DNA from: Tetramitus jugosus
Lineage: Eukaryota > Protista > Heterolobosea
Direction: 5' to 3'
DNA length: 64,000 bases
NCBI GenBank assembly: GCA_937625935.1
Contig: OW569353.1
Span: forward strand, 1-64,000
Below are positions 1 to 48,031 of the stretch, piece by piece. Numbering within the stretch: the first letter of the stretch is position 1; every line of letters starts with the position of its first letter. Below the pieces are notes generated by a model, which worked only from the letters and a program-made list of their open reading frames with translations, did no database searches and was not told the DNA's origin. Both the position numbers and the translations under genes were made by a program.

Positions 1-782
1 CCAAACCCAAACCCAAACCCAAACCCAAACCCAAACCCAAACCCAAACCCAAACCCAAACCCAAACCCAAACCCAAACCCAAACCCAAACCCAAACCCAA
101 ACCCAAACCCAAACCCAAACCCAAACCCAAACCCAAACCCAAACCCAAACCCAAACCCAAACCCAAACCCAAACCCAAACCCAAACCCAAACCCAAACCC
201 AAACCCAAACCCAAACCCAAACCCAAACCCAAACCCAAACCCAAACCCAAACCCAAACCCAAACCCAAACCCAAACCCAAACCCAAACCCAAACCCAAAC
301 CCAAACCCAAACCCAAACCCAAACCCAAACCCAAACCCAAACCCAAACCCAAACCCAAACCCAAACCCAAACCCAAACCCAAACCCAAACCCAAACCCAA
401 ACCCAAACCCAAACCCAAACCCAAACCCAAACCCAAACCCAAACCCAAACCCAAACCCAAACCCAAACCCAAACCCAAACCCAAACCCAAACCCAAACCC
501 AAACCCAAACCCAAACCCAAACCCAAACCCAAACCCAAACCCAAACCCAAACCCAAACCCAAACCCAAACCCAAACCCAAACCCAAACCCAAACCCAAAC
601 CCAAACCCAAACCCAAACCCAAACCCAAACCCAAACCCAAACCCAAACCCAAACCCAAACCCAAACCCAAACCCAAACCCAAACCCAAACCCAAACCCAA
701 ACCCAAACCCAAACCCAAACCCAAACCCAAACCCAAACCCAAACCCAAACCCAAACCCAAACCCAAACCCAAACCCAAACCC
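1..782 (+). repeat. Telomere, (CCCAAA)n, about 130 copies; G-strand TTTGGG
   Basis: Perfect hexamer array from base 1, C-rich strand 5' as expected at a left chromosome end. Confidence 0.98.
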
Positions 783-784
783 TA

Positions 785-1288
785 GTGTGCATTTAGGCGG
801 AACCAGCTGGTTCCACTGAAAATGTCATATTATAGGCGGAACCAGATAGTTCCACTGACAAAGTCAAGTTTTAGGCGGAACCAGCTGGTTCCTCTGTAAA
901 GTCGAAAATTTAGGCGGAACCAGATAGTTCCTCTGAAAAAAAGCTCTTTTAGGCGGAACCAGCTGGTTCCGCTTGTTTGTCCAAATTTTAGGCGGAACCA
1001 GATAGTTCCTCTGTAAAAAAGCTTTTCTAGGCCGAAATGCCTGGTTCCGCCTATTTTTTCGACACTCATCAGTCAATAGCTCATAGAGATTTGGGTTTTC
1101 TGAGTTCAAAACCCAACTCCATATCACAGTTTGGGTGATAGTTCAGAATCTATAGTGAGTTGTTTCATACAAAGCTTAAGTTGAACATTCCAGACCATAA
1201 AGAATACAAAAACAACGTTTACAAAGTACGGTTGACTGTATTAAGGCATTCTTGGTTTGCCGATATGTGACAACCCAAACCCAAACCC
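785..1288 (+). mobile_element. Telomere-associated module 1 (array + ~230-bp tail + telomeric seed), truncated by the telomere
   Basis: Near-identical to 2098-2599; ends TATGTGACAACCCAAACCCAAACCC. The duplication is seen; mobility is inferred. Confidence 0.6.
794..1053. repeat. 39-bp palindromic tandem array, copy 1 (7 units)
   Basis: TAGGCGGAACCAG(CTG/ATA)GTTCC starts at 794, 833, 872, 911, 950, 989 and (degenerate) 1028; exact 39-bp period; CAGCTG and CAGATA cores alternate. Confidence 0.97.
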
Positions 1289-1735
1289 TACCATGAGAAA
1301 GCTCCACCAGAAAAAGTTCAGTCACTGGAGAAAAGCTCCTCAGTAATTTCAGGTGGAGCCATGACAATTTTTACCTGAGAAAAACAGGTGGAGCCAAAAA
1401 GCTCCACCAGAGAAAAGCTGCCTAAGAGGAGAAAGCTCCACCAATAAAATTAGGCAGAGCCAAAAAGCTCCACCAGAAAAAAGCTCAGTCACAGAAGAAA
1501 AATTCCTCAGTCATTTTAGGTGGAGCTTTTTAGCTCCACTGGAAACCCAACTTGAAACCCAACTGGATACATGTAATTCGCAGTATAGTTCAACAACAAC
1601 AACATATTTTTTATTGATAAGCTTAGTTTGAGGGTTTCAGAGCATGACAAACACGATGTGTACTATTTCATACAACGACGGGTTTGGGTTATACAATATT
1701 GGCTTGCCTTTATGTCACAACCCAAACCCAAACCC
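1289..1735 (+). mobile_element. Telomere-associated module 2 (diverged family member)
   Basis: Tail homologous to module 1 (AAACCCAACT...ATAGTTCA; AAGCTTA.TTGA...TCAGA.CAT; TTGGYTTGCC..TATGTSACAACCCAAACCCAAACCC). Confidence 0.55.
1295..1541. repeat. ~66-bp palindromic array (GGTGGAGC-N6-GCTCCACC)
   Basis: AGGTGGAGC-type units at 1351, 1386, 1452 and 1518; GCTCCAC at 1301, 1401, 1435, 1467 and 1533. Confidence 0.85.
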
Positions 1736-2043
1736 TACCCACCCCACCCTTCTTGTATTTGTGTTTGTACTCCTTCATCCAAGTTGAACCTTCATCAAGG
1801 AGTGTAAGTTCCTTCATCATCCTTTGTTACAAAATATTTCATGTCGTGTCATTAGCCTTCTCCTTGTCCCACGTTTCTGTCCGTAGTCCATCGTCAATTT
1901 CACTGCCGTGAATGTATTCATTAGACTTGTATTCGCCCACAAAGTATTACAATCAAGTCATGAAGGAGTTCAATCTTGTCGTTCAACCGATCTATCACAC
2001 AGCATCTTCCTTCAGAAGTTAGAAACTCCCTGACCTCAGTCCC

Positions 2044-2599
2044 AAGTTCCTCTGTCGATATCCTCTTAGGCGGAACCATCTAGTTCCTCTTAGAGATGTG
2101 TGCATTTAGGCGGAACCAGCTGGTTCCACTGACAAAGTCATTATAGGCGGAACCAGATAGTTCCTCTGACAAAGTAAAGTGTTAGGCGGAACCAGCTGGT
2201 TCCTCTGTAAAGTTGAAAATTTAGGCGGAACCAGATAGTTCCTCTGAAAAAAAGCTTTTTTAGGCGGAACCAGCTGGTTCCGCTTGTGAGTCCAAATTTT
2301 AGGCGGAACCAGATAGTTCCTCTGTAAAAAAGCTTTTCTAGGCCGAAATGCCTGGTTCCGCCTATTTTTTCGACACTCATCAGTCAATAGCTCATAGAGA
2401 TTTGGGTTTTCTGAGTTCAAAACCCAACTCCATATCACAGTTTGGGGGATAGTTCAGAATCTATAGTGAGTTTTTCTATACAAAGATTAAGTTGAACATT
2501 TCAGACCATAACGAATACAAAAACAACTTTTACAACGTACGGTTGACTGTATTCAGCCAGTCTTGGTTTGCCGATATGTGACAACCCAAACCCAAACCC
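2044..2599 (+). mobile_element. Telomere-associated module 3 (longer copy of module 1)
   Basis: Direct duplicate of 785-1288 ending in the same telomeric seed; true 5' boundary uncertain. Confidence 0.6.
2066..2364. repeat. 39-bp palindromic tandem array, copy 2 (8 units)
   Basis: Units at 2066, 2107, 2144, 2183, 2222, 2261, 2300 and 2339; same unit order as copy 1 plus one extra unit at the 5' side. Confidence 0.97.
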
Positions 2600-3053
2600 A
2601 CCATCTTGTCCTGCGAAAGGCACTCAAAATGTGAAGTAGCAATCTGATTTTTACAGAGTCGCAACAACAACAGTTGCAACAGATGAAGCACACCCGATTG
2701 TTTTATCTGTCCTATGAATCTCAATCAGAGCCATTGCATCTCCGTTCAATTCGAACTCATGATCATAAGAATGGTTGTATCAATAAAAAAAATCACAAAT
2801 TACAGACCATTTGTTCGATTCATTGATTTGATTGATTCGTTTGTTTTTCATTGTTTTTATGCGATGTTTTTGTCAAACCCGGCTGGAACCCGGATTGCTT
2901 GTTCTGAAACTACATGTGTGTTTCACATTGTGGAAGATTCTTAAATTCTTCAAATGGAATGAAGAAAAAGATAGTAATCATCTGATACCGGAGTGCAGAA
3001 GAAGTGTGGTATAATAAGGGCTGTTGCTTACGTAACAACCCAAACCCAAACCC
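2600..3053 (+). mobile_element. Telomere-associated module 4 (no array)
   Basis: Ends AAGGGCTGTTGCTTACGTAACAACCCAAACCCAAACCC; AACCC doublet at 2876. Confidence 0.45.
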
Positions 3054-3789
3054 TCGCCATGACCATATGACCATTGCTGGCCCTCCTCATGACCCTTGCT
3101 AACTCTCGTCTTGACCTTATGACCATTGCTAAGACCTTCAAGTTAGCTCTACTATGTTCCTATGTTCATCCTTTTTGCATGGCGAGGGTACCTGGCCTCG
3201 TTCATTGTTCTTTGTCTCTAATTGCTTCAGCGATGACAGTAACACGTACGGAACAATGAAGGAGGACACTCTACATACGTTCCAAGTAATAATCTCTCTT
3301 CGTGTTGGATATCGCCTTGTTGACAACACTTTCTTTTCTTCGTGCGTCAAAAAAATGAAAAAGCGGCCTGTGTAATCGTGATTACACAAACAGTCATTTA
3401 TTCATCTGAATTTTTTTATGAAAAAAATTCGACAAAGTCCAAGATACGGCTCATTTGTAGGCCTTCATTGTCTTTTTGAATGTGTAGATCACTTTCCAAG
3501 TAGAACCACTGTCGACGCCCTATTGCAGGTCTGAGTATTGTGGGGGGATTACTGGCTTGACGAAAGGTCTGGCAGTTCGTTCCAGATAGTAATTTTCTTG
3601 ACTCAAAGAAGTCTGCTACCTTCACAAGACCCAAAATCTTTGTGATCCGATATTCTTCACACTTGGTGCGTTGTTACCTGCTGTAAAACTTTTAGCGCCT
3701 GCCTGTCAATTGTCAACTTTCAAAAAAAACTTTTTTTGAAAAAAAAACAACTCACATTTTGTTCCACACAAACATCTCCAACAAGGCTC

Positions 3790-5160
3790 ATGATTCCACT
3801 TGCTTCCCTTGGTGAAGATTGGGACAATATCCAAGATTTGAATATTAGATTTGTTGTGCAGAAAGTACTACTTCCTCATCAGTTGGTTAACTCAGAGGCA
3901 ATGAGAGGTTGTATAGGCATTAAGTCAGCTCACGATAATGCAAAATTGTTGAAAACCTTGTGTGATGATGATAATTCTGCATTACGACCAAAACTCAAGG
4001 AACTAATTTCTGAGTTGGGAGACAAAGTTAAGCAAGCTGAAGATGAAGTACATAACAATAACCAACAAAGTATTAACGAGCAAGCGGAACGCTCTAACTA
4101 TGAAAATTCGGACTACAACCTGGACAATTATAATAGTGATGGAGATGACAATAGAGAAGAAGAGCATGATGGAAATTATTCATTGTATAACTCAGATAGA
4201 TCATCTGATGATAGCAATATTGGTGGTGCAGATGGGTATTCGTGTGATGATAATGATCTTGATGGTCCCGACCAATATGATACGATGAACCCAGGCCAGG
4301 AGGAAGCGCATTTTGAGGAGATGGATGAAGTTTTACAAGAAAGAATGGAAGAATATTCTACTCATAACGACATTATAAATCTCGCTGAAGATTTGGAGGA
4401 ACTTCCTGTATATGCAATATACAATCGGGTAAATGCTATTGTTGAGAAACAAAAGAAATTCGATAAGGCAATGCAACTACAAAAGAGTAATGATCGTGAA
4501 GTTCTTCATTTTGTTGAGGATTCTGATTTACTCTGTAAGCTGTTGGATATGAACTTGGAACTAGAGACAGAGGAGAAAAGAAAAAAAACAGAGAAGAAAA
4601 GAAAAGAAACATTGAGGGCACTTTATCTATCAGCTACAGAGACTTGTACAGAACGGCTGACTCAGCAACCTGGTGCAAACATGGAAGATGTTCTATGCTC
4701 TTTACGACCTATTTACAGCCTTGTTGCTAACTTGTCTGTTGCATTTACTCTATACATTTATACTATTACAGAATGTGATAAAAAAACCTCCTTTTGGGAT
4801 GAAAAAATTGTTTACATTGGAATGACCACTGACATGTGGTTCAGACATAAAGGTGGTCATGTTGCTTCATCCAAGCTGCTCGACCCACAATATGCCAATT
4901 ATCATAAGAAGGTCTATTTATGTACCTGTTGTGTTGGTAATGTACCTGCAGAGTGGCTTAAATTCTCAGACGCAGAAGCGTTCGTTCTAATTGGTGAACA
5001 ATTCTTAATTAATTATTATCAACCAGAGTTGAATATTGAAGGTAAGAAGCAACCTGTTCTCAACAAGCGAGCCAAGGAGTTATACTCCAAAGTTTCAGCA
5101 GTTCATCTCAGCAGCGCTGATCGCATCAAAACTGTTGAACCTCCAGCCAGAGGTGCATAA
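3790..5160 (+). CDS. GIY-YIG endonuclease domain protein (acidic/coiled-coil N-terminus, C-terminal nuclease)
   Basis: LYIY...VYIGMTTDMWFRHKGGH...EQFLINYYQPELN gives the YIG, Arg, His, Glu and Asn motifs of GIY-YIG; intact intronless ORF; first ATG at 3790. Confidence 0.8.
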   Translation: MIPLASLGEDWDNIQDLNIRFVVQKVLLPHQLVNSEAMRGCIGIKSAHDNAKLLKTLCDDDNSALRPKLKELISELGDKVKQAEDEVHNNNQQSINEQAERSNYENSDYNLDNYNSDGDDNREEEHDGNYSLYNSDRSSDDSNIGGADGYSCDDNDLDGPDQYDTMNPGQEEAHFEEMDEVLQERMEEYSTHNDIINLAEDLEELPVYAIYNRVNAIVEKQKKFDKAMQLQKSNDREVLHFVEDSDLLCKLLDMNLELETEEKRKKTEKKRKETLRALYLSATETCTERLTQQPGANMEDVLCSLRPIYSLVANLSVAFTLYIYTITECDKKTSFWDEKIVYIGMTTDMWFRHKGGHVASSKLLDPQYANYHKKVYLCTCCVGNVPAEWLKFSDAEAFVLIGEQFLINYYQPELNIEGKKQPVLNKRAKELYSKVSAVHLSSADRIKTVEPPARGA

Positions 5161-5503
5161 TTCCTGAGTCCATTGGTACTTCGGAAAGAGATTCTTAGTA
5201 TAGTTGGTGTTGAGAGTTTTGTGGTGTGGTTTTTTCTGCTCCTCTGAACCCTGACAAGTTCACCTGAGTCGTATAAAAGAGTTCTCTCGGTCGAGGTTTT
5301 TCTTTGTCGCGAATTGCTGCTTCAGAGGATGGATCATTGAATAAATATTGTTAACCGTATGATAGATTGCACTTCATTGACTTTTTACTGTTGGTGATAG
5401 CAACGGAACAATGTACAGACCAAGTACAGTCGCACTGTTTCTGTCGTAATTTTGTGTTTTAGGGGCTGTTTTAAAAGGTGCGACTCACACAACTGTGTCT
5501 CAT

Positions 5504-6271
5504 TCATTTGATCTGGACGTATGCCTTTACCGTCTTTTTGAACGTGTCGAGATCGTAGATCGCTTTCCAAGCATAACCACTCCTGAGCAGTCGGCGCCCT
5601 ACTTCGAGTTGTTCGGGAGTAGGTTTGTTTGGATGTATTTTGAACTCGATGAATAGAGCACCAAACCGTTTGTTCTTCTTCAGAATGACGTAATCAGGGT
5701 AGCCTTTGAGTCTACCATTGCGCCTAGCCTTTTCTGTGCATGCCGCAATACCAATTCCAGCAATGTCAGCATTAACCACAATTCCAGGATAGGCTTTGCA
5801 CATGTGCGCATGAGCGTCGGACTGAAGCTGGTCCTCTTTGCCCATTTTCTTGGGATTGATACCTTTTATCTTCTTCTTTACTGGTTTCGACCCGTACATA
5901 AGTATGTGATTCAAGTCTTTCTCTTTCAGTTCAGACACAACCCTCTTTCTACTAACTGAAAAAGGGGACACAGCATCCTTGCGCATCCGGGTCATTTTCG
6001 CAGGCTTCTGTATGCCATTTTTCGGTTCCCTCTTCTTTGGATCCGGCTTCTTGGTTTCTCTGGTTTTGACTTTCGCGGTAATCTTGGATACCACTTCAGA
6101 CGATTTCCTAACTGCTTTCCTGGATGGAGACTGTGTTTCATTGACTTCTGTCACCATCTTGCGTTTTACCTCTATGATCTTCTCTGGCTTCTTGATACCA
6201 TTCTTAGGTGGTGTTTTGGCCGGTTTGGCTTTTGGTGTGGGCTTCTTCTCTGTTTTGACCGTTGTAATCAT
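5504..6271 (-). CDS. VRR-NUC family PD-(D/E)XK nuclease with Lys-rich N-terminus
   Basis: KEDQLQ...KGYPDYVIL...LFIEFK..NKPTPEQ...L...GY is the stand-alone VRR-NUC pattern. Confidence 0.85.
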   Translation of the reverse strand: MITTVKTEKKPTPKAKPAKTPPKNGIKKPEKIIEVKRKMVTEVNETQSPSRKAVRKSSEVVSKITAKVKTRETKKPDPKKREPKNGIQKPAKMTRMRKDAVSPFSVSRKRVVSELKEKDLNHILMYGSKPVKKKIKGINPKKMGKEDQLQSDAHAHMCKAYPGIVVNADIAGIGIAACTEKARRNGRLKGYPDYVILKKNKRFGALFIEFKIHPNKPTPEQLEVGRRLLRSGYAWKAIYDLDTFKKTVKAYVQIK

Positions 6272-6336
6272 GTTGTGTTTCTATTCCAGCTTCGAAGTGA
6301 ATATGTTGATTAGTAAGTGTTGTGTAACATTTGTGT

Positions 6337-6678
6337 TTATTCTCTGATTATGTGGTTGAGACATTCAGCATACTGGCGAATCTGTATGCATGACCGATCT
6401 AGTTCGGGTCTGAATGATATCAAGCCGTAGCGTGTCCGCTCTCCAGTTGTCTTAATTTCGAAGATACAGACCCATTTCAAAAATATCGCATTGGACTTGA
6501 GTGCCAACGCATACACTTTAACGTGTTGCGTCTCATGGACATGCTGGAGGACTTCAGCCTTCTCTGGTTCACCAGGTACTTTGGATGCGAAGAAGATGTT
6601 TCCATTGGGGTACATAGCCATACGGACTGATGTCTGTGCGAATGCATCAAGGTCCCATTTCCTGTTGCTCTGGTTCAT
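6337..6678 (-). CDS. Hypothetical protein (ORFan)
   Basis: ATG overlaps an upstream stop (ATGA, 6675-6678); co-oriented with neighbours; no recognised motif. Confidence 0.45.
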   Translation of the reverse strand: MNQSNRKWDLDAFAQTSVRMAMYPNGNIFFASKVPGEPEKAEVLQHVHETQHVKVYALALKSNAIFLKWVCIFEIKTTGERTRYGLISFRPELDRSCIQIRQYAECLNHIIRE

Positions 6679-8798
6679 TTGGGTGGTTTTGTTTCTGGGC
6701 TCTGTGAACAGAATTCTTGTTTAAATAATTCCCGGACGTCGGGCTTGAGCATGTTCAGTGTAGATTATCTAGGATGCGCTTGGGCTCATACACAACAGCT
6801 TCTGTTGCATGTGTTAGTTCGTGCGCAATCTGAAACCCTAACAGAGCAAATTGGCTGGTTCTGTCGTACAGCGTGCTGAACATGGGTGTGCGTAGGATGC
6901 CGGGTGGAATGGTGACTGAGTGACTTTCTGGTTGGTACCACGCATTGGTGCTGGTTGACTCATCGTATGTAATGTCAGTAGAAACAGTTCGGCCGTTTAA
7001 CATCAATCCACCATCAGAGTCTAGCCACGACGGCCGGAAACGCATGTACACTCTGTCAGTGATTGCTGTTACAATGTTGAGTCCAAAATTAACGGATGAT
7101 ACATCCATGTTGTTCTCTGCCTCAAGTAACAGTTGGGGACCGTTTTCACCGTATGTATCTGTTGTCAACTTGCCAAGAGAACACTCGCCGACCGACACAC
7201 GAAGGCTGTCGAGTTGGGTCAAGAGTTTGTCACGAGTATGTTTGTTTGTTGAGCACCATAGATCGATTTTCACCTTTGTCATTGATGAGAGATTTTCGCG
7301 TACCTCCCAGAAGAATCATATCTCTGTACGTGTGACGAATCTCGTTGGCGATGTATGTTGCTTGTTTCTGACGTTCTGATGATTCAGCATCCATCTCTAC
7401 GAACGCATTGCAGTATGACAGAGGAAAAGTGTGTTGTACGGTGCGAGCACACATATCAACTAACGATCCAGGTTCTTGTGCAATTCGGGCGGTTGCCTGT
7501 TGTACGAGCTGTGCACTCTGGATGAAAATAGAGTCTGACGTTGTGTGTTTATCTATCACGAGTGGAGAGACACCTCCGTGAGACATCACACTACTGCTTA
7601 TATCTGGTACAGCACGCAAAACATGTTCGTACATACACACCATGAGGTACGACTTCCACGTACTCACTTCCATGTGTGCGAGGGCTCGGTCCAAATTGAG
7701 CATATGTTGATTGGAAGCCACGAAAACATTATCAATGTTCGTGGATGTCAACTTTGGGCGGACTCCTGCCTCTGGAAACATCAAGCTTTCTGGAGCAGAG
7801 AGTTGGTTTCTTCCATTTCCGTCCACATAGTTCACCTTGTCAAGACTGTGCAGAAAATGGCGCACTTCATAGGCGTCACAGAGCATGTTAATGATGTCGA
7901 CCATGTGGTTTTGATTTTCAATGCCTATATGGAAGGCATATGATGCAATAAAGGTGGATATATCGCTGTGAGATGGTCTTCCAGGTCTAATGACCAGAGT
8001 GGTGTCAGACGTCTCGTTCCTGTACTCAAAAGAGTGCATCTCTACTCCTATGCCTCTGTACGCCATGTGAAACAATGTGTCAACAACACCCTGTTTATCC
8101 TTCACCAAATTGATCATTCTCTCTATTCCTGTCACAAAGTCGAGCAGAGGTTTCCAACGAATGACTTCTGCGAGATGTAGCCGCCACTTTTTGTGAAATT
8201 GGGACGCACTGCGTAGTGTTGTGATTTGTGTGCCTGGTGATGCTGATAGAGCTTTGTAGTGCGTCACACATGACGTGAGCAGCTTGTGCATGTTATTGTG
8301 AGTATTGTACTTGGCGGTATTTTCTGCGATTGGCTTAGAGCTACTGAACTTGGTGATACGACCGCTCTCCAGAAACGAGTGGAGGCGCGAGATATCATGT
8401 GCATTCTCGCTCATTGTTGTCACTATGAAGCGATTGAATGGTTGCTTCCATCCGCTGCACGCATGCTCGTAAAAGCTGCTGCAAGGATTGATTTTCTTGT
8501 CCAAGAGGGTTTCACTGGCTGTGCTTGGGTAGAAGAACCGATGAGTGCTCTCCGGGTGGTTGTCGTCTTGTTCTTGTTCGACTTCCCTGATCAGCCCATC
8601 AATTAGAGGCATGCGTTGTGTGGTTAGCTTGTTCCATTTCACAGTTTGAGAAGCACGTGGGAGATCTTTGTGTCGTAGTACAAGATCCCAGACAAAGAAT
8701 AGGACTGATAGAAGCAAAAAAGTCCCACCAGACGCAAGCAGAGCGAACGCCACGATGGTACTTGTTCTTGCACAAGCATAAAAACGCACAGAGACCAT
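6675..8798 (-). pseudogene. M13 (neprilysin/ECE) zinc metallopeptidase, frameshifted
   Basis: N-terminal TM anchor; INPCSSFYEHACSGW; NAWYQPESHSVTIPPGILRTPMF; IAHELTH. Split over ORFs 7230-8798 and 6755-7282; downstream ENxAD motif not seen. Confidence 0.85.
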
Positions 8799-9079
8799 GA
8801 TTCTCGGTTAGTAACTATCTAGTTGTGTTTCCTATTTACAAAGTGGTTCTTGAATGTTAAACGCAACGCAATATGGATTCCCTATTTAACGTCGTCCTCT
8901 GGTTCCCCGGTGTTTCCGTAAAAGTTGTCATAGTTGATGTCCGTGTTCTTGCGTCGTCTTGGTGACTCTTCCTCCGGAGCAGAAAATACCATATTTGTTA
9001 TAATAGAGATCCTGTAGTTCCAGATTATTAGGACCTCGTCATATTACTCCTAGTTTGTTGATATTCAACAACAAACAAA

Positions 9080-10960
9080 ATGATAGGTCGCTTGTTCAAG
9101 TACACAGGAGATATGCTGCTCGTGCGCCGCAATCCTCTTAAATTCCCTGAGGTGACGGTGGTTGGAACGTCTTCTTTGACGATCTGCGCTTTGTCTTCGA
9201 TCTTATGGATATGCTTCCGCTGCATGAGTTGTATCAACTCAAGCAGATCTCTCGTTGGTTCAACCGCTGTGTGTTCATTTATCTACACTCTGAGCGCATG
9301 AATCGTCGCAGAGCACTGCACGAACACATCGGGGCAATTGACGTAATGCTGATGCCTGGGCGTGATAAACATACCTCAGTTGGAGCTGATGCATTCGTAC
9401 TCAGAGCCCTCATTGGAACTCAGACAACCCATTTAACACTTGAAGAAGGATGTTGCAGTAGTCAGGTTCAGAGAGATTTGTGTGTACCACGTGATATGTG
9501 TGTCTTTGTGAATGGGAAGCAGAATTCGTGCATTACAGATTCTGACTTGTTCCCTGATGTCAGCCAAACATACAAGTATTTTGTTCTCATGAAGGCCGGT
9601 GGTTGGAGAGAACGCTCTCGAAAATCAAAAACACGTTACTTTTACTCTGGTGACCAGATGGTGAACACGGAGACCAAACGATTCGTGGTGCTTGCTGATG
9701 AGAGAGCACGTATTGCCAATCTCATCACACTCAACAGAGGCACTCACAAGACCACTGGCCTGTGTTACGTGGGCATTTTTGGCCAGATTATTGAACCACC
9801 GAACGTCAGGGACGGTACCGTCCTTGTGGCACAGGATCAAAATACGCCACTGATGTTCCTCATCCGGACACACGGTACCGTCAAAAAACTGAGCCTGGAA
9901 AAGTGTGTTGCTGACTTGTCTGTTCGATCCTTCATCGGCTATCGTATGCGTGAAGTGAGAGGGTCTTCGCTTGAGACCATCCAACTCACTCAATTTGGAC
10001 ACGGACTTCGTGAACTTGATCTCTCCAACACAACTCTCAATAACACTGACCGTTCCATTCACATCTGGAGGAAGTATGCCTGTCCGGTGTGAATGGAATC
10101 GACGATATGCATGTGCGCATGATATTTAAGATGCTGGTTCTTCTGGAGAAGCTCGATGTTAGCCGCTGCTCTGGCGTTACAGCAAAATTGTTCCTCCGGC
10201 GGAGGATGAACACCTACGAACTTGTACAGGATCCATTGGCAAGCTCAGATACAGTTAGATCCGTTTTTGAATGCAACTACAGACGAGCTCTGGCTTACCA
10301 AAGTCCATGGGCCAAGGGAGAGTGTTCAGATGCCACGAATCTGCGTCGCTTCTTTGCTAACAAATCTCTCTCATCTGGGTGGCTAGAAGGTAGAGGATTC
10401 TTCCAGAAGTTAGTTTGGGTTCCCCTCATCTCACCAGCCTATACCTTTCCGGATCTCTGTGTAGATCGCTGTTTCCAATTCTGAATTCATGCAACAAACT
10501 GAACATTGTACACTTGGACAATCCAACTTACTCGTGGGTTTTGAACAATGCACATGTGAAGACAGTATGTATGTATGCTCCACACCTCGAGGTGTTGAAC
10601 CTGGCTGGTTGTACTGGATTGAATTTGAGTGCTGTGTACTACATTTCCCAATACGCGAAACATCTGAGACATCTAGATCTGAGCAACAATCCAAACATGA
10701 CATCGTCAGTCATTTCCATTCTGATGACTGGAGAAGAACACAGGCCATACAAACTCAAAGAGATGTGTGCAAGAGCGAACGCTATCGCTCATATATCTGA
10801 CAACCAAACAGAAGAAAAAGGTGCCATCCCGGAGAATCCACTGCTCAGACTAAGACACCTCAATCTGATTCTCTTGACAGGATGTTCTGAAGTCAACAAG
10901 AACGAACTCGGTATTGTTGCCAGTTTCGACATGTACAAGCACATCTCGGTTGTGGTTTAA
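9080..10960 (+). pseudogene. F-box / cysteine-containing LRR protein, several frameshifts
   Basis: F-box-like DLMDMLPLHELYQLKQISRWF; LRRs LRELDLSN, LEKLDVSRCSGVT, LEVLNLAGCTGL and LRHLDLSNN lie in three successive frames. Confidence 0.75.
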
Positions 10961-10961
10961 T

Positions 10962-11213
10962 TTATTTGGATGGTGTAAAACAGAACACAATGAAGATGAT
11001 TAACATGGTGCAGATCGAGCTCGTATAGAAACACCAGATGTGACGCTCCCCTAAGTACGCAACGGTTAGCTCTCTGAGACCGGCGTACGAGTCATGTTGC
11101 ATGCTTGAGACAGTAATGTCCATCTGCTCGTGTAACTTGTAGTCGGATTCTTCTGGATGTTGCATTTTGTGGGTTTGTTGTGGTACTTGAACAATAATGC
11201 CTGTTTCGCTCAA
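10962..11213 (-). CDS. Small hypothetical protein with C-terminal TM helix
   Basis: Fills the gap between neighbours; hydrophobic C-terminus; start codon uncertain. Confidence 0.4.
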   Translation of the reverse strand: MSETGIIVQVPQQTHKMQHPEESDYKLHEQMDITVSSMQHDSYAGLRELTVAYLGERHIWCFYTSSICTMLIIFIVFCFTPSK

Positions 11214-11262
11214 TAAAGATCACTCTCTAACGCTCTACGTTTGAACGAGAAACACAAGCAAC

Positions 11263-11889
11263 ATGACAGAAGAAGCCCGTAGCTTATATGATGCATATTG
11301 CCTCCGACTTTCACGAGATCCTGTATGTGTCGGTCGTCTAGTCAGTCTTTGGTTCCAATACCCTTTATTCGTGACATGCGAACCGTGTGTAACGAGACCG
11401 GAGCTTACAAGGGAGATGTCCAAGTTTCGGCTTTGTGGCACGGACGTGCTCTCTATATCTGACGGTAGAAGTGATATATTTGCACACTTCCTCGAATACG
11501 TGCTGTTCGGAACAGTCGACCTGAGTGTAGACAGTGACGGAGTATATCTTGACGAAGATCGAGTTCTCTTTGTTCCTATCACTGAGATGCAGCTGTATGA
11601 TTCGCCAGAGAGCAATGACTTAAGTGAAGTAATAGCAATCTACAAGCAGTGGATTGAGCGAAATTCGGAGTTCTTCGAAAACCGAGCTCACGTCATTTAC
11701 CAGTGTTCGTATCGAGAGTACAAGGGAAACAGGTGCGTCAATGGCAGACCGCGAATGTTACCCGTGGAGTTAGTGTGGGCTGTGTGTGTCTCTTTCCTTG
11801 TGTTCATTCAACGAGAAGTGCGCATAGCGTGGGGATTCTACTGGTTACAATCATCTAACCTATCGTTGTTCCAGAGAAAAAGAGTTTAG
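11263..11889 (+). CDS. Hypothetical protein (ORFan)
   Basis: 208-aa ATG ORF, globular composition, no recognised family. Confidence 0.55.
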   Translation: MTEEARSLYDAYCLRLSRDPVCVGRLVSLWFQYPLFVTCEPCVTRPELTREMSKFRLCGTDVLSISDGRSDIFAHFLEYVLFGTVDLSVDSDGVYLDEDRVLFVPITEMQLYDSPESNDLSEVIAIYKQWIERNSEFFENRAHVIYQCSYREYKGNRCVNGRPRMLPVELVWAVCVSFLVFIQREVRIAWGFYWLQSSNLSLFQRKRV

Positions 11890-11891
11890 TG

Positions 11892-12287
11892 ATGCACATT
11901 GTGGACAAGGTGATGGAAGAGAAGAGGATGATGCAGGTGAATGCGTTGTCCTCTGACGAGTACCGGGACTTACAAATTCTTCAGGACGAATGTATCACTG
12001 AAGTGTACAACGGAATCGTTTCCTCGCTGACCACGGCGTTCATGCGCCGCTCTTCTGTTCGGGACTTGGATCCCAACTACGCCACAAGATTGGCGATCAT
12101 GCGCACGGTGACGTGTAAACTAGAAGACTTGGCTATGGAACACACGAACTCGATTTCGCTGACAAAACCTCAGGCAAATCACGTGTCTCAAGAGTGGACA
12201 AGGGTACAAAGAACAGTAATGCAGCAAAAAGACAGGGCTATCTCCTTTATGGATGATAAGTACGGCATCTTCAGCCGGTTTTGGTGA
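11892..12287 (+). CDS. Hypothetical helical protein (ORFan)
   Basis: ATG 2 bp after the previous stop (TAG TG ATG). Confidence 0.55.
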   Translation: MHIVDKVMEEKRMMQVNALSSDEYRDLQILQDECITEVYNGIVSSLTTAFMRRSSVRDLDPNYATRLAIMRTVTCKLEDLAMEHTNSISLTKPQANHVSQEWTRVQRTVMQQKDRAISFMDDKYGIFSRFW

Positions 12288-12388
12288 TTTAAACTGAAGC
12301 CATTCTCAAAAGTTCCGCTGTCATTTCATTAAGATCGTCCAAGAACTTGCACATGGTACGATTGTTATTCAAATCTTTACTGGTGGGC

Positions 12389-12802
12389 TCACCAGTAAGG
12401 GCAATAAGTGACACATCGTTCTTTTACGCCGTGTTGAGTAATCCATACCAATCGACACTCAAGTTCTCTTTCCTTCATGGTCTGTATTTCGACGAGAGAA
12501 GAGAATGAATCATCAATGTAGTACAGACCTTCGAGGTATTGAATCACCAACAGGATTGAGACCTGGTGTTGAAGATTGGCAAGCAAGTTTTGGGTGAAGA
12601 ATTGACTCCTGAGTTTGAAAACAAAAGTGGCACTCTGCTTGGTGAGCAAATCTTGATACAAATTCCTTGATTTTCTGAAATTCTCCTGTTGAGAACTCAC
12701 CCGAGGCCCAACAGAACTTGAGATGTAAAATATTCCCTTGCAACAATTGCGCCAAAAATTCCATTTTTCAGATTTTCCTGAGTTTGTTCCTGTCAGCAAC
12801 AA
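12389..12802 (-). pseudogene. Probable degraded ORF of unknown family
   Basis: Overlapping ORF fragments in two frames filling the gap in the compact cluster. Confidence 0.3.
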
Positions 12803-12835
12803 AAGTTCTAAAAAAACAACATAAAAGATCTCAGG

Positions 12836-13518
12836 ATGTCCATTCTTTCCAAAAAATGGTTTTGGTACCCTTTGGCCATAATCTTACTTGCAGTAATTTT
12901 CAAAGAGCAGTTGGAAACATGCATGCGGGTATGCCCCCAGAACAACTACGAGTACCAAGCAACAGCCACAAAGGAACAAGAAAGAGAAGTGTTTGTCAAA
13001 TCTCAACAGCTGCAAGAAGAAACAGAGGAAGAACGAACTCATCGAGAGTACAAAGATATTGCCCGCCAATTGCGAAAGAAGAGGCGAGAGAGGCAGCGGT
13101 CCGAAGAAGCTCGGATTTTACCCAGAAGGACAATGTTTGCCTGTGTGGGCGACATCGTGCGAAGTGTCACGCATTTGCTGCCTTGCTGTCAGACAACCGC
13201 TTGTCAAGGCAAGACGTGACACTGAACTTATCGAGCGCTCAGCTGTGATTCACTCACAACGAAACCAGCAAACAAGTCAACGCTTTGCGTGATTTGGAAA
13301 CAAAGAACCGTCAAATCAGAATATTCTTCACCCATAAAGTAAAGTGTTTTAACAATGAACTGGCCAGACGTCTACGTGCCGAATGCACCCAAAAACATTT
13401 CCAACAACCCATGTTTGATTTCGAGTACCACAAGAAGATGACGGGGATCGCGAGCCCAGTCCAAAGTTTTGAATCGCCAACAGAGATTGATTCCCTGGTT
13501 TGGGGAGTGAAGGATTGA
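12836..13518 (+). pseudogene. Membrane-anchored coiled-coil protein, frameshifted
   Basis: N-terminal TM WFWYPLAIILLAVIF, charged helix, continuation in ORFs 12993-13292 and 13285-13518. Confidence 0.45.
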
Positions 13519-14699
13519 TTCCAAGCTCTGAAGCACAAGATAGTGATTTCAAGGTGTTGAAAATAAGAAAGTTGGCGAAGCCTGGCGCTTGGAGAAAGAG
13601 CTGAAAACGCCAAGCCAGGCTTTGCAATTTTCAGAGTTGGTGATCGAGTGACAATCGAGTGTCAAAGATTGTGCTTTGCAACCAACAAGGCGTCACACCA
13701 AGGATGGATTGTGCTTTGCAATCTCGGGTCTACAACAACGAGCAGGATTGATTTTGCAATCAAGGATGGATTTAACAATGGTTTCGAGGCGAAGCCAAGC
13801 ACTTGGGACAGAAACGAGGGACACTCTGATGATCAACCACTCGAAGGTACAACCACCGGTTTGTCACAAGACAATCGCAATCCTGTCAGGTTTCGAAGCA
13901 CTGAACAATTCAACCCTGTAAGGTTTTGTGATCACGTGAGGTTTGGATCATCAACAAGGTTTGGATCATTTATTTAGGAGGTGTTGTTCTGATAAAGAAA
14001 TCAATTGTTATTGAACTTCCTATCAAAGAGGTTGGTGTAACCCGCAGGTGTAAGGATCGGTAGATACCTGATAGACAGGCTGCGGAACTGTTGTAGATTT
14101 ATTTGGCGGAGAAATCTCGGCCACACAACGATTTTTTTGCGATACAAACAAAACATGAAGATTAAAGCAGTATCGTCACCAACCGCCGCCTCCTCAGGTC
14201 CTTACTAGTAATGATATTGTTCTCCATTTGTCCTATGTGTTGGTTGAAGAAACAATAATAGATGTATACACAAGTTTTTATTCGTTTGTTTTGTGGCTTT
14301 GTTTGTTGGGCTTTGTTGATGAGTGTGTGAAAGCACCTTCTTATACCACACGTTCATGTTTCTCTCATTTGACCTCATTTTGTTCACACGCTCACTTTTC
14401 TCATATCTGACCACTTTTTGGCCACACGTTTCTCTTATGTAACTTTTCAAGTTTTCCCTACAATTTTTCATACGAACTGTGTGAATAGGGTGTGTGATAT
14501 AGAAGATTCATGACAAAAACTCACATACCGCATTCACTTGCTTTCGATGATAGAGTGGCAGTGTCACAGTCATCACAAGATTAAGGGTTGGATTCTGATA
14601 TAACAAGCAGAAAGAAAGTGAGTGTCAATCAACAACATTTCGATGAATAAAGACATATCCAATGATTTTTGTTTGTTGTTCCTTTTAGTTTTGTTGAAG

Positions 14700-14885
14700 C
14701 GGGTGGATTGACAACCCTGCTAAAACCCGGTTAGGAGCTGAACTGACAAATCATGAACAATGGACCAAATGAATGCTTAAACCGAGATCTAGATGAAAAA
14801 CAACAAAGTATCCCCATCGAGAGATTGAGTTATTGTTTGCTCCATAGTCAAAAGGGCCATGGCTTACGTGATAACCCAAACCCCA
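14700..14885 (+). repeat. Fifth copy of the module terminus with telomeric seed
   Basis: 14852-14883 matches 3016-3047 at 27/32 ungapped positions; AACCCTGCTAAAACCCGG (14713) matches AACCCGGCTGGAACCCGG (2876) at near-identical spacing from the seed. Confidence 0.75.
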
Positions 14886-15016
14886 CCCGCGAGGGTGATG
14901 GCTTCCATTCTTTGGTTTGGGTTTAAGAGTGCAGTGCTCATGTGCTTTTCGCTCTCCTTATCCTTATTTTTTTTATTTGAGGTAGCCAACAGCCAAGCTG
15001 GCCACAAGCGTAAAAC

Positions 15017-15739
15017 TCAATTCAGAGTTGGCCAAACGTATGAAAATTTTATTGAGGCAAGAGTTGTTCTCTCTTCCTGGCGATTCATTGGCTTGCGATG
15101 ACCATGGAATGACCAAACCATCAAGAGGAGCGACAACCCTAACCAAGTAAGTGAACATGGGATGGCAGCAAAGCGAATTAGCTTGAGTATCAAAGGCAGA
15201 GTATTCGTGACTGGCAGACCAAACACTGACATAAATGCAAACACAAAAATCACCAGTCATCCAGAGCAGTACCAACAATCAGCCACAAGAAGAAGATGAT
15301 CATTCGAACCACAGAGTTGCTCAAGCCAGCAGATGAAGGAAACCATATGCAGTAGACTACCCAGAATGGTTTCTCAACAACAAACACAAGCAGAGATGCG
15401 AAGGCAGTAGCCATCAAAGACCTCGACACCGCTTCACTTGCTGTTTTTACAGCATTTGATAAGAATTGTAGGTTTAACGTCGGCGGAGTCGATGATTTTT
15501 GCAGAGTAGTCATCAAATCCAGCACTCTTCTGTTGAGAAGAAGAAGATGTAGATGACTTCAAATTGACACTGGCGCGATTCGGGTTCACATCCTCTGTAA
15601 AATCAAAGAATGAAGTCGCATTGGACGATGTTCTTGCTCTAGTGACTTCAATCTTTGCTGGATTGTGAATCAATTTCTGAATGGGTTGTGGCTCTGGCAA
15701 ATCAGAATCAAAGTTCAGGGTTGTTCTGGATGATGGCAA
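15017..15739 (-). pseudogene. Possible degraded multi-pass membrane protein
   Basis: Chain of short hydrophobic ORFs in different frames. Confidence 0.3.
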
Positions 15740-16193
15740 TGTTCAAGTACGTTGCAAAAAGTGTCCATCCCAGATAGGGCACCATCAGCTTAACTGAATT
15801 CACCGAATTCTTTGCGAACGAGAACATGGTCAAGATTATGAAGGAATTAAGAGCGAGAACTACAGCCAGGGCCTTCTTCGGGTTCTTTTGCTTGAAGAAC
15901 ACAGCTGACCAATAGAAGTTCAGGAAAAGTTGTGAAATGAAGAAAATCGTACCTGATGCAATGTTCTTCTTTGCCTTTTTCATCTGGCGGATCCACATGG
16001 CCAATGCTACACCCATCAACGAGTAAAGAATTGTCCATACAACCGGAAAAATCCAGCCAGGCGGGAACCATTTGTTCTTCTTGAGGACTTGAAACCATTC
16101 CTGTGATTCCTCTCTGGAGATGTAGAGCAAGGAGTACGCTGTGGATAACAACAACGGAGCTGCAGCTATGGCAATTTGATGTAGAGCGATCAT
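15708..16193 (-). CDS. tspO: TspO/MBR translocator protein
   Basis: WFQVLKKNKWFPPGWIFPVVWTILYSLMGVA, QLFLNFYWSAVFF and LMVPYLGWTLFATYLN are TspO motifs; likely start MIALHQ. Confidence 0.95.
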   Translation of the reverse strand: MIALHQIAIAAAPLLLSTAYSLLYISREESQEWFQVLKKNKWFPPGWIFPVVWTILYSLMGVALAMWIRQMKKAKKNIASGTIFFISQLFLNFYWSAVFFKQKNPKKALAVVLALNSFIILTMFSFAKNSVNSVKLMVPYLGWTLFATYLNIAIIQNNPEL

Positions 16194-32599: not shown

Positions 32600-32670
32600 T
32601 GCATCTGCCGGGATTCGAACCCGGGTCGCAGCGATGGCAACGCTGCATGATACCCCTACACTACAGATGC
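32600..32670 (-). tRNA. tRNA-Gly(GCC)
   Basis: GCATCTG/CAGATGC acceptor stem, anticodon loop TTGCCAT, GGTTCGAATCC T-arm. Confidence 0.96.
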
Positions 32671-47933: not shown

Positions 47934-48031
47934 GCCTCTATAGGTCAGAGGATAGACTATCGGTCTCCTACCCGCCCAATGTTGGGATTGAGTAAAACCG
48001 GGGGTCGCGGGTTCGAATCCCGCTAGAGGCT
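47934..48031 (+). tRNA. tRNA-Arg(CCT) with 25-nt intron (47971-47995)
   Basis: GCCTCTA/TAGAGGC acceptor stem; TCGGT-CTCCTA-intron-A-ACCGG; GGTTCGAATCC; T-run downstream. Confidence 0.92.

Follow-up and report, generated by a model that had tools for sequence, protein, structure and literature searches.

Telomere-seeded repeat units stacked head to tail at a chromosome end of the heterolobosean Tetramitus jugosus

Introduction

How does a chromosome end come to carry a stack of short, mutually diverged repeat units that all point in the same direction and all close with the same short piece of telomeric sequence? This question is raised by a 64,000-nucleotide (nt) stretch of the genome of Tetramitus jugosus (Heterolobosea; assembly GCA_937625935.1, contig OW569353.1, positions 1 to 64,000 of the forward strand), referred to here as the window, in which a terminal telomere array is followed by five repeat units, U1 to U5, each ending in the motif TAYGTVAY and a C-strand telomeric seed. 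A first-pass annotation, made from the letters of the window, had described these termini as a candidate new telomere-extending element system. We find that the units are a real feature of this chromosome end and that they are probably mobile. The explanation that we favor, at somewhat less than an even chance, is that they belong to a family of units that extend chromosome ends via an RNA template. The family would comprise three to four diverged lineages at the least, and its 17-nt seed would be encoded by the unit itself.

Results

A terminal box and a telomeric seed shared by five units

The terminal telomere array occupies positions 1 to 782 and reads (CCCAAA)130 on the + strand (period 6, 130.3 copies, 100% matches; complement TTTGGG). 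Because of this, the + strand of the window is the C-strand, and the 3' ends of the units face the centromere. TTTGGG is the candidate telomere repeat proposed for Naegleria gruberi from genome survey data (PMC3622300). In the 64 kb, the pattern TAYGTVAY-AACCC occurs exactly five times, always on the + strand (at 1264, 1711, 2575, 3029, and 14865), compared with 0.01 occurrences expected from shuffles, and AACCCAAACCC is found on the + strand outside the terminal array at the same five places only, each preceded by TAYGTVAY. The box TAYGTVAY alone is at chance level (20 found versus 21.4 expected), and since it was fitted after the fact, only its placement beside the seed is meaningful. Four of the seeds are the same 17-mer, AACCCAAACCCAAACCC, and the fifth consists of 12 nt followed by a degenerate CACCC. 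A second AACCC lies upstream of the seeds of U1 to U5 by 162, 163, 162, 161, and 160 nt, respectively, at an AACCC background of 0.44 per kb. Both observations of the first-pass annotation on which the idea of an element system had been built, five co-oriented termini with box and seed and a second AACCC 160 to 163 nt upstream of each, hold at all of their coordinates.

Four units abut head to tail after the telomere (783-3053), with lengths of 506, 447, 864, and 454 bp, and none of them has coding capacity. The tail of U5 lies 11.8 kb further in than these four, right before the first housekeeping genes, so that the head-to-tail stacking proposed for the whole set stands for U1 to U4 but not for the fifth unit. 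The common design is a tail of ∼210 nt with an internal AACCC box and the terminal box TAYGTVAY, followed by the C-strand telomeric seed. Upstream of the tail, U1, U3, and U5 carry a 38- to 39-bp minisatellite and U2 has hairpin repeats in its place; U4 does not reach far enough for this part to be seen. The AACCC box is doubled, with its copies 11 to 12 nt apart, in U2, U4, and U5.

All five units lie on the + strand. U1 (783-1288, 506 bp) is a 5'-cut copy of the U3 type and is composed of a 39-bp palindromic minisatellite (792-1050), a tail (1051-1271) ending in TATGTGAC, and the 17-nt seed (1272-1288); its internal C-rich box (AAACCCAAC, 1108-1116) is placed 162 nt before the seed. U2 (1289-1735, 447 bp) contains GCTCCACC/GGTGGAGC hairpin repeats (∼1298-1540), the doubled internal AAACCCAAC box (1543-1564), a tail ending in TATGTCAC, and the seed at 1719-1735. 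In U3 (1736-2599, 864 bp), an irregular C-rich start (1736-1749) and a unique part (1750-2044) precede the 39-bp minisatellite (2045-2361), the tail with its internal box at 2419-2427, and the seed (2583-2599). U4 (2600-3053, 454 bp) has a tail homologous to that of U5 (2767-3036), which includes the internal box (2874-2891, with the AACCC doublet at 2876 and 2887) and ends in TACGTAAC, and a seed at 3037-3053. The recognizable part of U5 (14346-14889) comprises a 38-bp minisatellite (14346-14428), a tail (14612-14872) with its internal box at 14713-14728 and the end TACGTGAT, and the degenerate seed AACCCAAACCCC-ACCC (14873-14889).

The 39-bp minisatellite (792-1050 and 2045-2361) has a 78-bp higher order, its cores being, in alternation, GGAACCAGCTGGTTCC, a perfect 16-bp palindrome, and GGAACCAGATAGTTCC; the palindromes of U2 are different (GGTGGAGC...GCTCCACC). 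Judged by their letters, both kinds of palindrome resemble hairpins or the sites at which a dimeric protein binds. No complementarity between unit starts and unit ends, as terminal inverted repeats would give, was seen on inspection by eye, and the seeds that flank a unit may equally be read as a 17-bp target-site duplication. An inverted telomere-like pair is present at U5, where AACCCAAACCC (14873-14883) is followed 29 nt further on by its complement with one mismatch (14913-14923), and a pair in the reverse arrangement is found in U2, where GGGTTTGGGTT (1680-1690) precedes the seed at 1719 and forms a hairpin with 24-nt arms.

Kinship among the units and constancy of the seed

U1 and U3 are close relatives, with 785-1294 matching 2098-2604 at 95.3% and tails that are 94 to 95% identical. 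Their identity passes through the seed and is lost within ∼6 nt after it, where unrelated sequences follow (U2 after U1 and U4 after U3). On the distal side, U1 is cut by the telomere inside the minisatellite, and U3 extends ∼350 bp further. With the seeds excluded, the tails of U1/U3 are 54 to 58% identical to that of U2 (z = 5.9 versus dinucleotide shuffles) and the tails of U4 and U5 are 57% identical to each other (z = 6.5; local alignment score of 79 versus a shuffle mean of 29 with a standard deviation of 3.8), while identities between these two groups are 47 to 51% (z = 1.9 to 3.3), a weak similarity that still exceeds that of shuffles. The tails of U2 and U4 share 18 of their last 30 nt. 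Given the relatedness of U1 to U3, of U1 to U2, and of U4 to U5, the five tails are not five independent observations, and there are in effect four lineages, joined by a faint common ancestry or by a shared design. An nhmmer profile built from the five tails identified no further copy within the 64-kb window.

The analysis supports three properties that had been attributed to the units: at least three diverged subfamilies, as seen in the tail identities and shuffle z scores; a 3' boundary fixed at the seed, past which the 95% identity of U1 and U3 is gone within the few nucleotides given above; and a fixed polarity within the window (five of five units). The proposed variable 5' truncation is seen only for the outermost unit, U1, an observation for which simple erosion and healing would be another explanation; the 5' ends of the other units belong to different lineages and are not comparable.

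The 17-nt seed is identical at 17 of 17 positions in four units whose tails are only 47 to 58% identical between lineages. Given that a neutral 17-mer at ∼55% identity would stay identical with a P of ∼4e-5 per pair, the seed is constrained in the source copies or rewritten at each addition. That its length does not vary argues further that the seed is part of the unit rather than a telomere remnant, which could have any length. The only decayed seed is that of the innermost and presumably oldest unit, U5. The bases just after the seeds are rich in C (17 of 40 versus a background of 21%; P = 0.0015) and may represent the 3' end of the unit, the 5' end of the next unit, or microhomology at the old chromosome end. 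In the same positions CCAT recurs (as TACCAT, ACCAT, and TCGCCAT, at 1289-1296, 1736-1749, 2600-2607, and 3054-3061), and an irregular CCCACCCCACCC run directly follows the second seed.

Searches for copies elsewhere

The box-plus-seed pattern had no match in collections of metagenomes, of prokaryotic genomes, or of viruses (0 in each), and three proteins encoded in the window, looked up by exact sequence in a collection of assemblies, were not among its records. A scan of the metagenomes with (CCCAAA)5.5 yielded 120 loci, of which 17 have terminal arrays; most of these 17 contig ends are AT-rich and look ciliate-like. Neither tail homology nor stacked seeds occurred among them (0/17 for both), and since the stacked seeds are missing from these other (CCCAAA)n ends, TTTGGG telomeres do not generally carry such a stack. 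One metagenome locus with spaced tracts (contig Ga0209979_1012002, 1-1700; L073) was rejected as unrelated, as it looks prokaryotic and carries an intergenic repeat, TTAAATTTTAACCCCAAACCCAAAC, before genes; one of its TTAAATTTTAACCCCAAACCCAAAC copies is expanded to nine CCCAAA repeats.

The block between U4 and U5 and the host genes

The sequence between the fourth seed and the minisatellite of U5 (3054-14345) contains genes on both strands and no telomeric tract or internal seed. Closest to the stack, starting 0.7 kb past the fourth seed and co-oriented with the units, is an open reading frame (ORF) of 474 amino acids (3736-5160, + strand) with a GIY-YIG-type nuclease domain in its last 115 residues. 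This domain has 39 relatives at an E value of ≤1e-3 among 1.84 billion representatives, mostly metagenome proteins of ∼235 amino acids, in which Y, G, R, GH, E, and N are invariant, and it matches phrog_16890. The whole 474-amino-acid protein had no homologues in a word-index search, and the contigs encoding the nearest relatives (L121 to L128) showed no telomeric context. Convergent with this ORF is one of 255 amino acids (5504-6271, - strand) with a lysine-rich N-terminal part and a C-terminal domain resembling VRR-NUC nucleases and Holliday junction resolvases, which matches phrog_824 (3e-15), phrog_5702, and phrog_93 and, weakly, PDB entry 4qbl. Two phage-like nuclease genes, GIY-YIG and VRR-NUC-like, are thus adjacent in the distal subtelomere.

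Further inward, the block encodes an M13 (neprilysin-type) peptidase with its HExxH motif (6758-8807, - strand) in two overlapping frames (6758-7315 and 7233-8807), a split that reflects either a short intron or a frameshift, followed by a leucine-rich repeat gene in three frames (9151-10957, + strand) and unassigned ORFs (11245-13974, + strand). The GC content of the subtelomeric block is 0.44 to 0.46 at 6000-14000, versus ∼0.41 in the more proximal core genes. As to its origin, the block may be a giant unit's body, a set of host genes trapped between units, as has been described for Terminon arrays (PMC6431247), or a segment copied from another chromosome end.

From ∼14.9 kb inward, directly after the seed of U5, the window carries compact, intron-poor housekeeping genes, namely those for TspO, a peroxiredoxin-like protein, a dual-specificity phosphatase with a gelsolin domain, a kinase-ArfGAP protein, an alliinase-type aminotransferase, PIG-N, UTP10, profilin, and NDUFS4. 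The closest named relatives of PIG-N come from Willaertia magna (48%), Naegleria gruberi (50%), and N. lovaniensis (48%), the next matches being at 40%, and the top named match of the aminotransferase is from Acrasis kona. Together with the TTTGGG repeat, these relatives mark the host as a heterolobosean that belongs to none of those genera. There is a tRNA gene with a 27-nt intron at 47934-48031 (+ strand) and a second tRNA gene at 32600-32670 (- strand).

Discussion

How such units could be added to a chromosome end

RNA-templated addition, which we favor tentatively, would proceed as follows; its RNA stage, its priming, and its enzyme are all inferred. A + strand transcript would end in the seed, which would anneal to the G-rich 3' terminus of a chromosome that is shortened or has lost its cap. 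A reverse transcriptase (RT) encoded elsewhere, or telomerase itself, would then extend the end along the transcript, so that the unit would be added outward with its 3' end toward the centromere. The new end would later be eroded and healed by telomerase, or receive the next unit, and repeated rounds would build the stack from inside to outside in the order U5, U4, U3, U2, U1. Priming at a G-overhang fits the units because a C-strand seed stands at the centromere-facing end of each and all five are co-oriented. The decay of the innermost seed only is in line with outward sequential addition followed by neutral decay, and the C-rich bases after the seeds, which mark old ends, are consistent with priming at G-rich 3' ends.

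Several observations weigh against this explanation. The palindromic minisatellites and the presence of genes on both strands in 3054-14345 lean toward a DNA element or recombination rather than a single transcript, and 5' truncation is documented for the outermost unit alone. The comparison covers one chromosome end of one species and effectively four independent tails. No hammerhead ribozyme was matched by Rfam in 700-16000, either at the gathering threshold or at an E value of ≤5, nor was there a CUGANGA core on the + strand of any unit. The same Rfam search returned no other match except chance microRNA-like ones on the palindromic minisatellite, and a lone hammerhead-core match in 1-16000, located within the gene block (7376-7426), was dismissed as chance. 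A conserved RNA structure of the tails was not found either (RNAalifold consensus of -4.2 kcal/mol): the best terminal hairpin has 73% of its cells paired, a value reached by 45 of 500 shuffles, and among the terminal folds only that of U2 is clearly better than shuffles (z = -4; others, -0.6 to -1.1). Finally, no RT domain was found in the Pfam matches of the 86 stop-to-stop segments of at least 60 amino acids in 0.8-15 kb (E ≤ 0.1), or among the best 25 of 30 Pfam families for the 53 segments of at least 110 amino acids in 15-64 kb (E ≤ 0.001).

Ten further long ORFs (E ≤ 0.0001) gave no RT, and a domain of the endonuclease/exonuclease/phosphatase family was, like RT, absent from 0.8-15 kb and from the families listed for 15-64 kb. 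These searches of open segments agree with the earlier statement that no RT is visible in the window; a partner RT elsewhere in the genome is possible. A template role of the internal AAACCCAA box, resembling that of a telomerase RNA, was considered and dropped, as only ACCC is invariant across the lineages and no supporting structure exists. A narrower version of RNA-templated addition, which we regard as rather doubtful, is that the units are noncoding, telomere-annealing retro-units comparable to short interspersed nuclear elements, lacking a hammerhead and mobilized in trans by an unlinked RT like that of Penelope-like elements or by telomerase. The seed and terminal box would then serve as a docking signal, and the units would represent an independently evolved or very anciently diverged form of end extension, in a deep eukaryotic lineage that has ordinary telomerase repeats as well.

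Other routes to the same arrangement

We rank RNA-templated addition first, followed by recombination, by a Helitron-like DNA element, and by healing scars or an assembly artifact. Recombination and the Helitron-like element match the observations almost as closely as RNA templating, and a small share of the probability is given to none of the four. Under recombination, which is possible but somewhat unlikely, the units would not be transposable elements but amplified subtelomeric blocks: a critically short telomere would invade a seed tract on the sister chromatid or on another end and copy outward by break-induced replication, with erosion and healing trimming the outer end and the seeds being perfect because the junctions are rebuilt from fresh telomere. 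Amplification of subtelomeric blocks at eroded telomeres, bounded by a homologous repeat, is documented (PMC5700057), and a review of Terminons expects such chains to undergo break-induced replication (PMC6431247). This route accounts for telomeric tracts in one orientation delimiting the blocks, and U1 could be derived from U3 if an end invaded the seed (2583-2599), then eroded back as far as the minisatellite, and was healed. Subtelomeres commonly contain minisatellites and genes on either strand, and the route needs no RT, transposase, or ribozyme, matching their absence in the window. However, the junction tract is exactly 17 nt long four times, where varying residual telomeres should give variable lengths, although the junctions number only four, and 17 nt is short for Rad51-dependent invasion. 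Recombination also predicts no conserved box beside the seed, yet in the most dynamic region of a chromosome four lineages diverged by ∼50% keep, side by side, the box, the spacing of 160 to 163 nt, and the seeds, which looks like selection on source copies and less like local duplicates in decay. A constant 17-nt seed that is identical across diverged lineages and abutted by the box, with a conserved spacing to the internal box and decay of the innermost copy only, therefore favors a seed encoded by the unit, be it in an RNA-templated or a DNA element, over recombination.

On the DNA side, a precedent was described only in 2026: the germline chromosomes of Paramecium aurelia are capped by telomere-targeted Helitrons (PMC13085455). 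Their left end is at the tip, and satellites of ∼44 nt lie 42 to 168 nt from a right terminal sequence with a stem-loop, after which short, co-oriented telomeric repeats invariably come; many copies lack ORFs (PMC13085455). The T. jugosus units could be ORF-less derivatives of such a telomere-targeting DNA transposon, moved by a rolling-circle mechanism with the Rep/helicase encoded elsewhere, an explanation that we hold to be unlikely. In its favor, the layout matches the published one point by point, from satellites of ∼39 to 44 nt through a terminal sequence to telomeric repeats in one orientation, with the right end inward and ORF-less copies (PMC13085455). The perfect palindromes of the minisatellites would suit HUH enzymes that recognize hairpins, and in the minimum-energy folds of four of the five tails a stem closes at the tail/seed boundary, leaving 6 to 13 nt of the seed unpaired. 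Helitron families typically keep their 3' end conserved while the 5' part varies, and they capture genes in both orientations, which would fit the 11.8-kb block before U5.

Set against these similarities, no Rep/HUH or Pif1 helicase domain was found in the 86 segments of 0.8-15 kb or among the Pfam families listed for 15-64 kb, although ORF-less derivatives would lack these domains anyway. Nor is a conserved left terminus evident: the one pair from a single family, U1 and U3, start differently, though erosion of U1 could have removed such a terminus, and the units share no 5' motif beyond the recurring (A)CCAT, which is of uncertain assignment. The 3' stem-loop has no statistical support, there is no CTRR or CCAA terminus, and the sole precedent is in ciliates. 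The constant seed is easier to reconcile with a sequence encoded in the unit than with a flank taken from the target, the length of which varies in Paramecium (PMC13085455). Together with the C-rich old ends, it leans toward priming at an RNA 3' end over a DNA element. Scars of repeated breakage and healing, with telomerase-added tracts trapped between unrelated sequences, or an artifact of assembly at a repetitive end, would be a very improbable source of the stack. Chromosome ends are hard to assemble and the proximal flanks of the seeds are C-rich as at healing sites, but the sequences upstream of the seeds are homologous and share the terminal box, where healing would follow unrelated sequence; the seeds are all of the same length and phase, and the units, at 47 to 58% identity, are too different for collapsed or misjoined reads of one repeat.

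Comparison with known telomere-associated systems

Endonuclease-deficient Penelope-like elements, which include Athena, Coprina, and the Terminons, have reverse-complement telomeric repeats at their 3' ends and form head-to-tail chains with 5'-truncated copies capped by telomeric repeats and with host genes between copies (PMC6431247; PMC8557442). A hammerhead ribozyme is reported for all Penelope-like elements examined (PMC4209133), and in Terminons and Athena it stands immediately before the telomeric 3' repeats (PMC6431247). The T. jugosus units resemble Athena of bdelloid rotifers, Coprina of fungi, and the giant Terminons in their terminal location, in 3' ends that point to the centromere, in chains separated by short telomeric tracts, in an outer copy (U1) that is 5' cut and telomere capped, and in genes located between copies (U4 and U5). 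As reported for some Terminons, an ORF for a GIY-YIG-like nuclease with a coiled-coil-like N-terminal part is found nearby. Set against these elements, the 64 kb yielded neither a Penelope-like or TERT-like RT nor a hammerhead ahead of the seed. The units of the stack measure 0.45 to 0.86 kb and are noncoding, a palindromic minisatellite of 38 to 39 bp lies ahead of the tail, the seed is fixed at 17 nt, and the host belongs to Heterolobosea. The first-pass annotation had aligned the units with the Athena/Terminon group, and in its apparent action the stack does resemble such a chain. Membership was not upheld, however: the polarity, the 3' telomeric repeats, and the head-to-tail chain match, but two tested defining features, a linked RT and the hammerhead, are lacking, and we do not file the units there.

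With the Paramecium Helitrons, the units have in common satellites of ∼40 nt shortly before a terminal sequence, co-oriented telomeric repeats after it, and a predominance of ORF-less copies; unlike them, they show no Rep/helicase, conserved left terminus, supported stem-loop, or CCAA end in our searches, and they have a constant seed and belong to another host lineage. The Y' elements of yeast and STEEx of fission yeast (PMC5700057) are likewise tandem, co-oriented blocks with short telomere-like tracts between them, which form where telomeres have eroded, without any enzyme encoded by the element (PMC5700057). Here, in contrast, the tracts are uniformly 17 nt long, several deeply diverged lineages share box and spacing, and the blocks are far smaller than Y'. 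The telomere-specific non-long-terminal-repeat retrotransposons HeT-A, TART, and TAHRE of Drosophila and SART and TRAS of Bombyx (PMC5537684) also form head-to-tail terminal arrays with 3' ends toward the centromere and variable 5' truncation. They have a poly(A) end or insert by an endonuclease inside long telomeric arrays, and they encode gag and RT, whereas the T. jugosus units end in TAYGTVAY and a telomeric seed, with no A-run and no RT found.

Literature searches retrieved no description of a telomere-associated element for Heterolobosea. What appears to be new, from the arrangement of the letters, is thus a candidate set of telomere-seeded end-adding units in a heterolobosean, set apart from both the Athena/Terminon chains and the Paramecium Helitrons. 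If the units are instead products of recombination, this end would be an ordinary, though neatly organized, subtelomere. End-attaching Penelope-like elements have been discussed as relatives of telomerase and possibly as its forerunners. A third structurally distinct telomere-seeded set, in Discoba, would show that end extension from a seeded template is widespread in eukaryotes or has been invented repeatedly. Moreover, units that have neither a ribozyme nor a linked polymerase and that stand beside a normal, 780-bp telomerase-type array would be a simple system for asking which enzyme copies them and when, a possible occasion being that they serve as a backup when telomeres become critically short.

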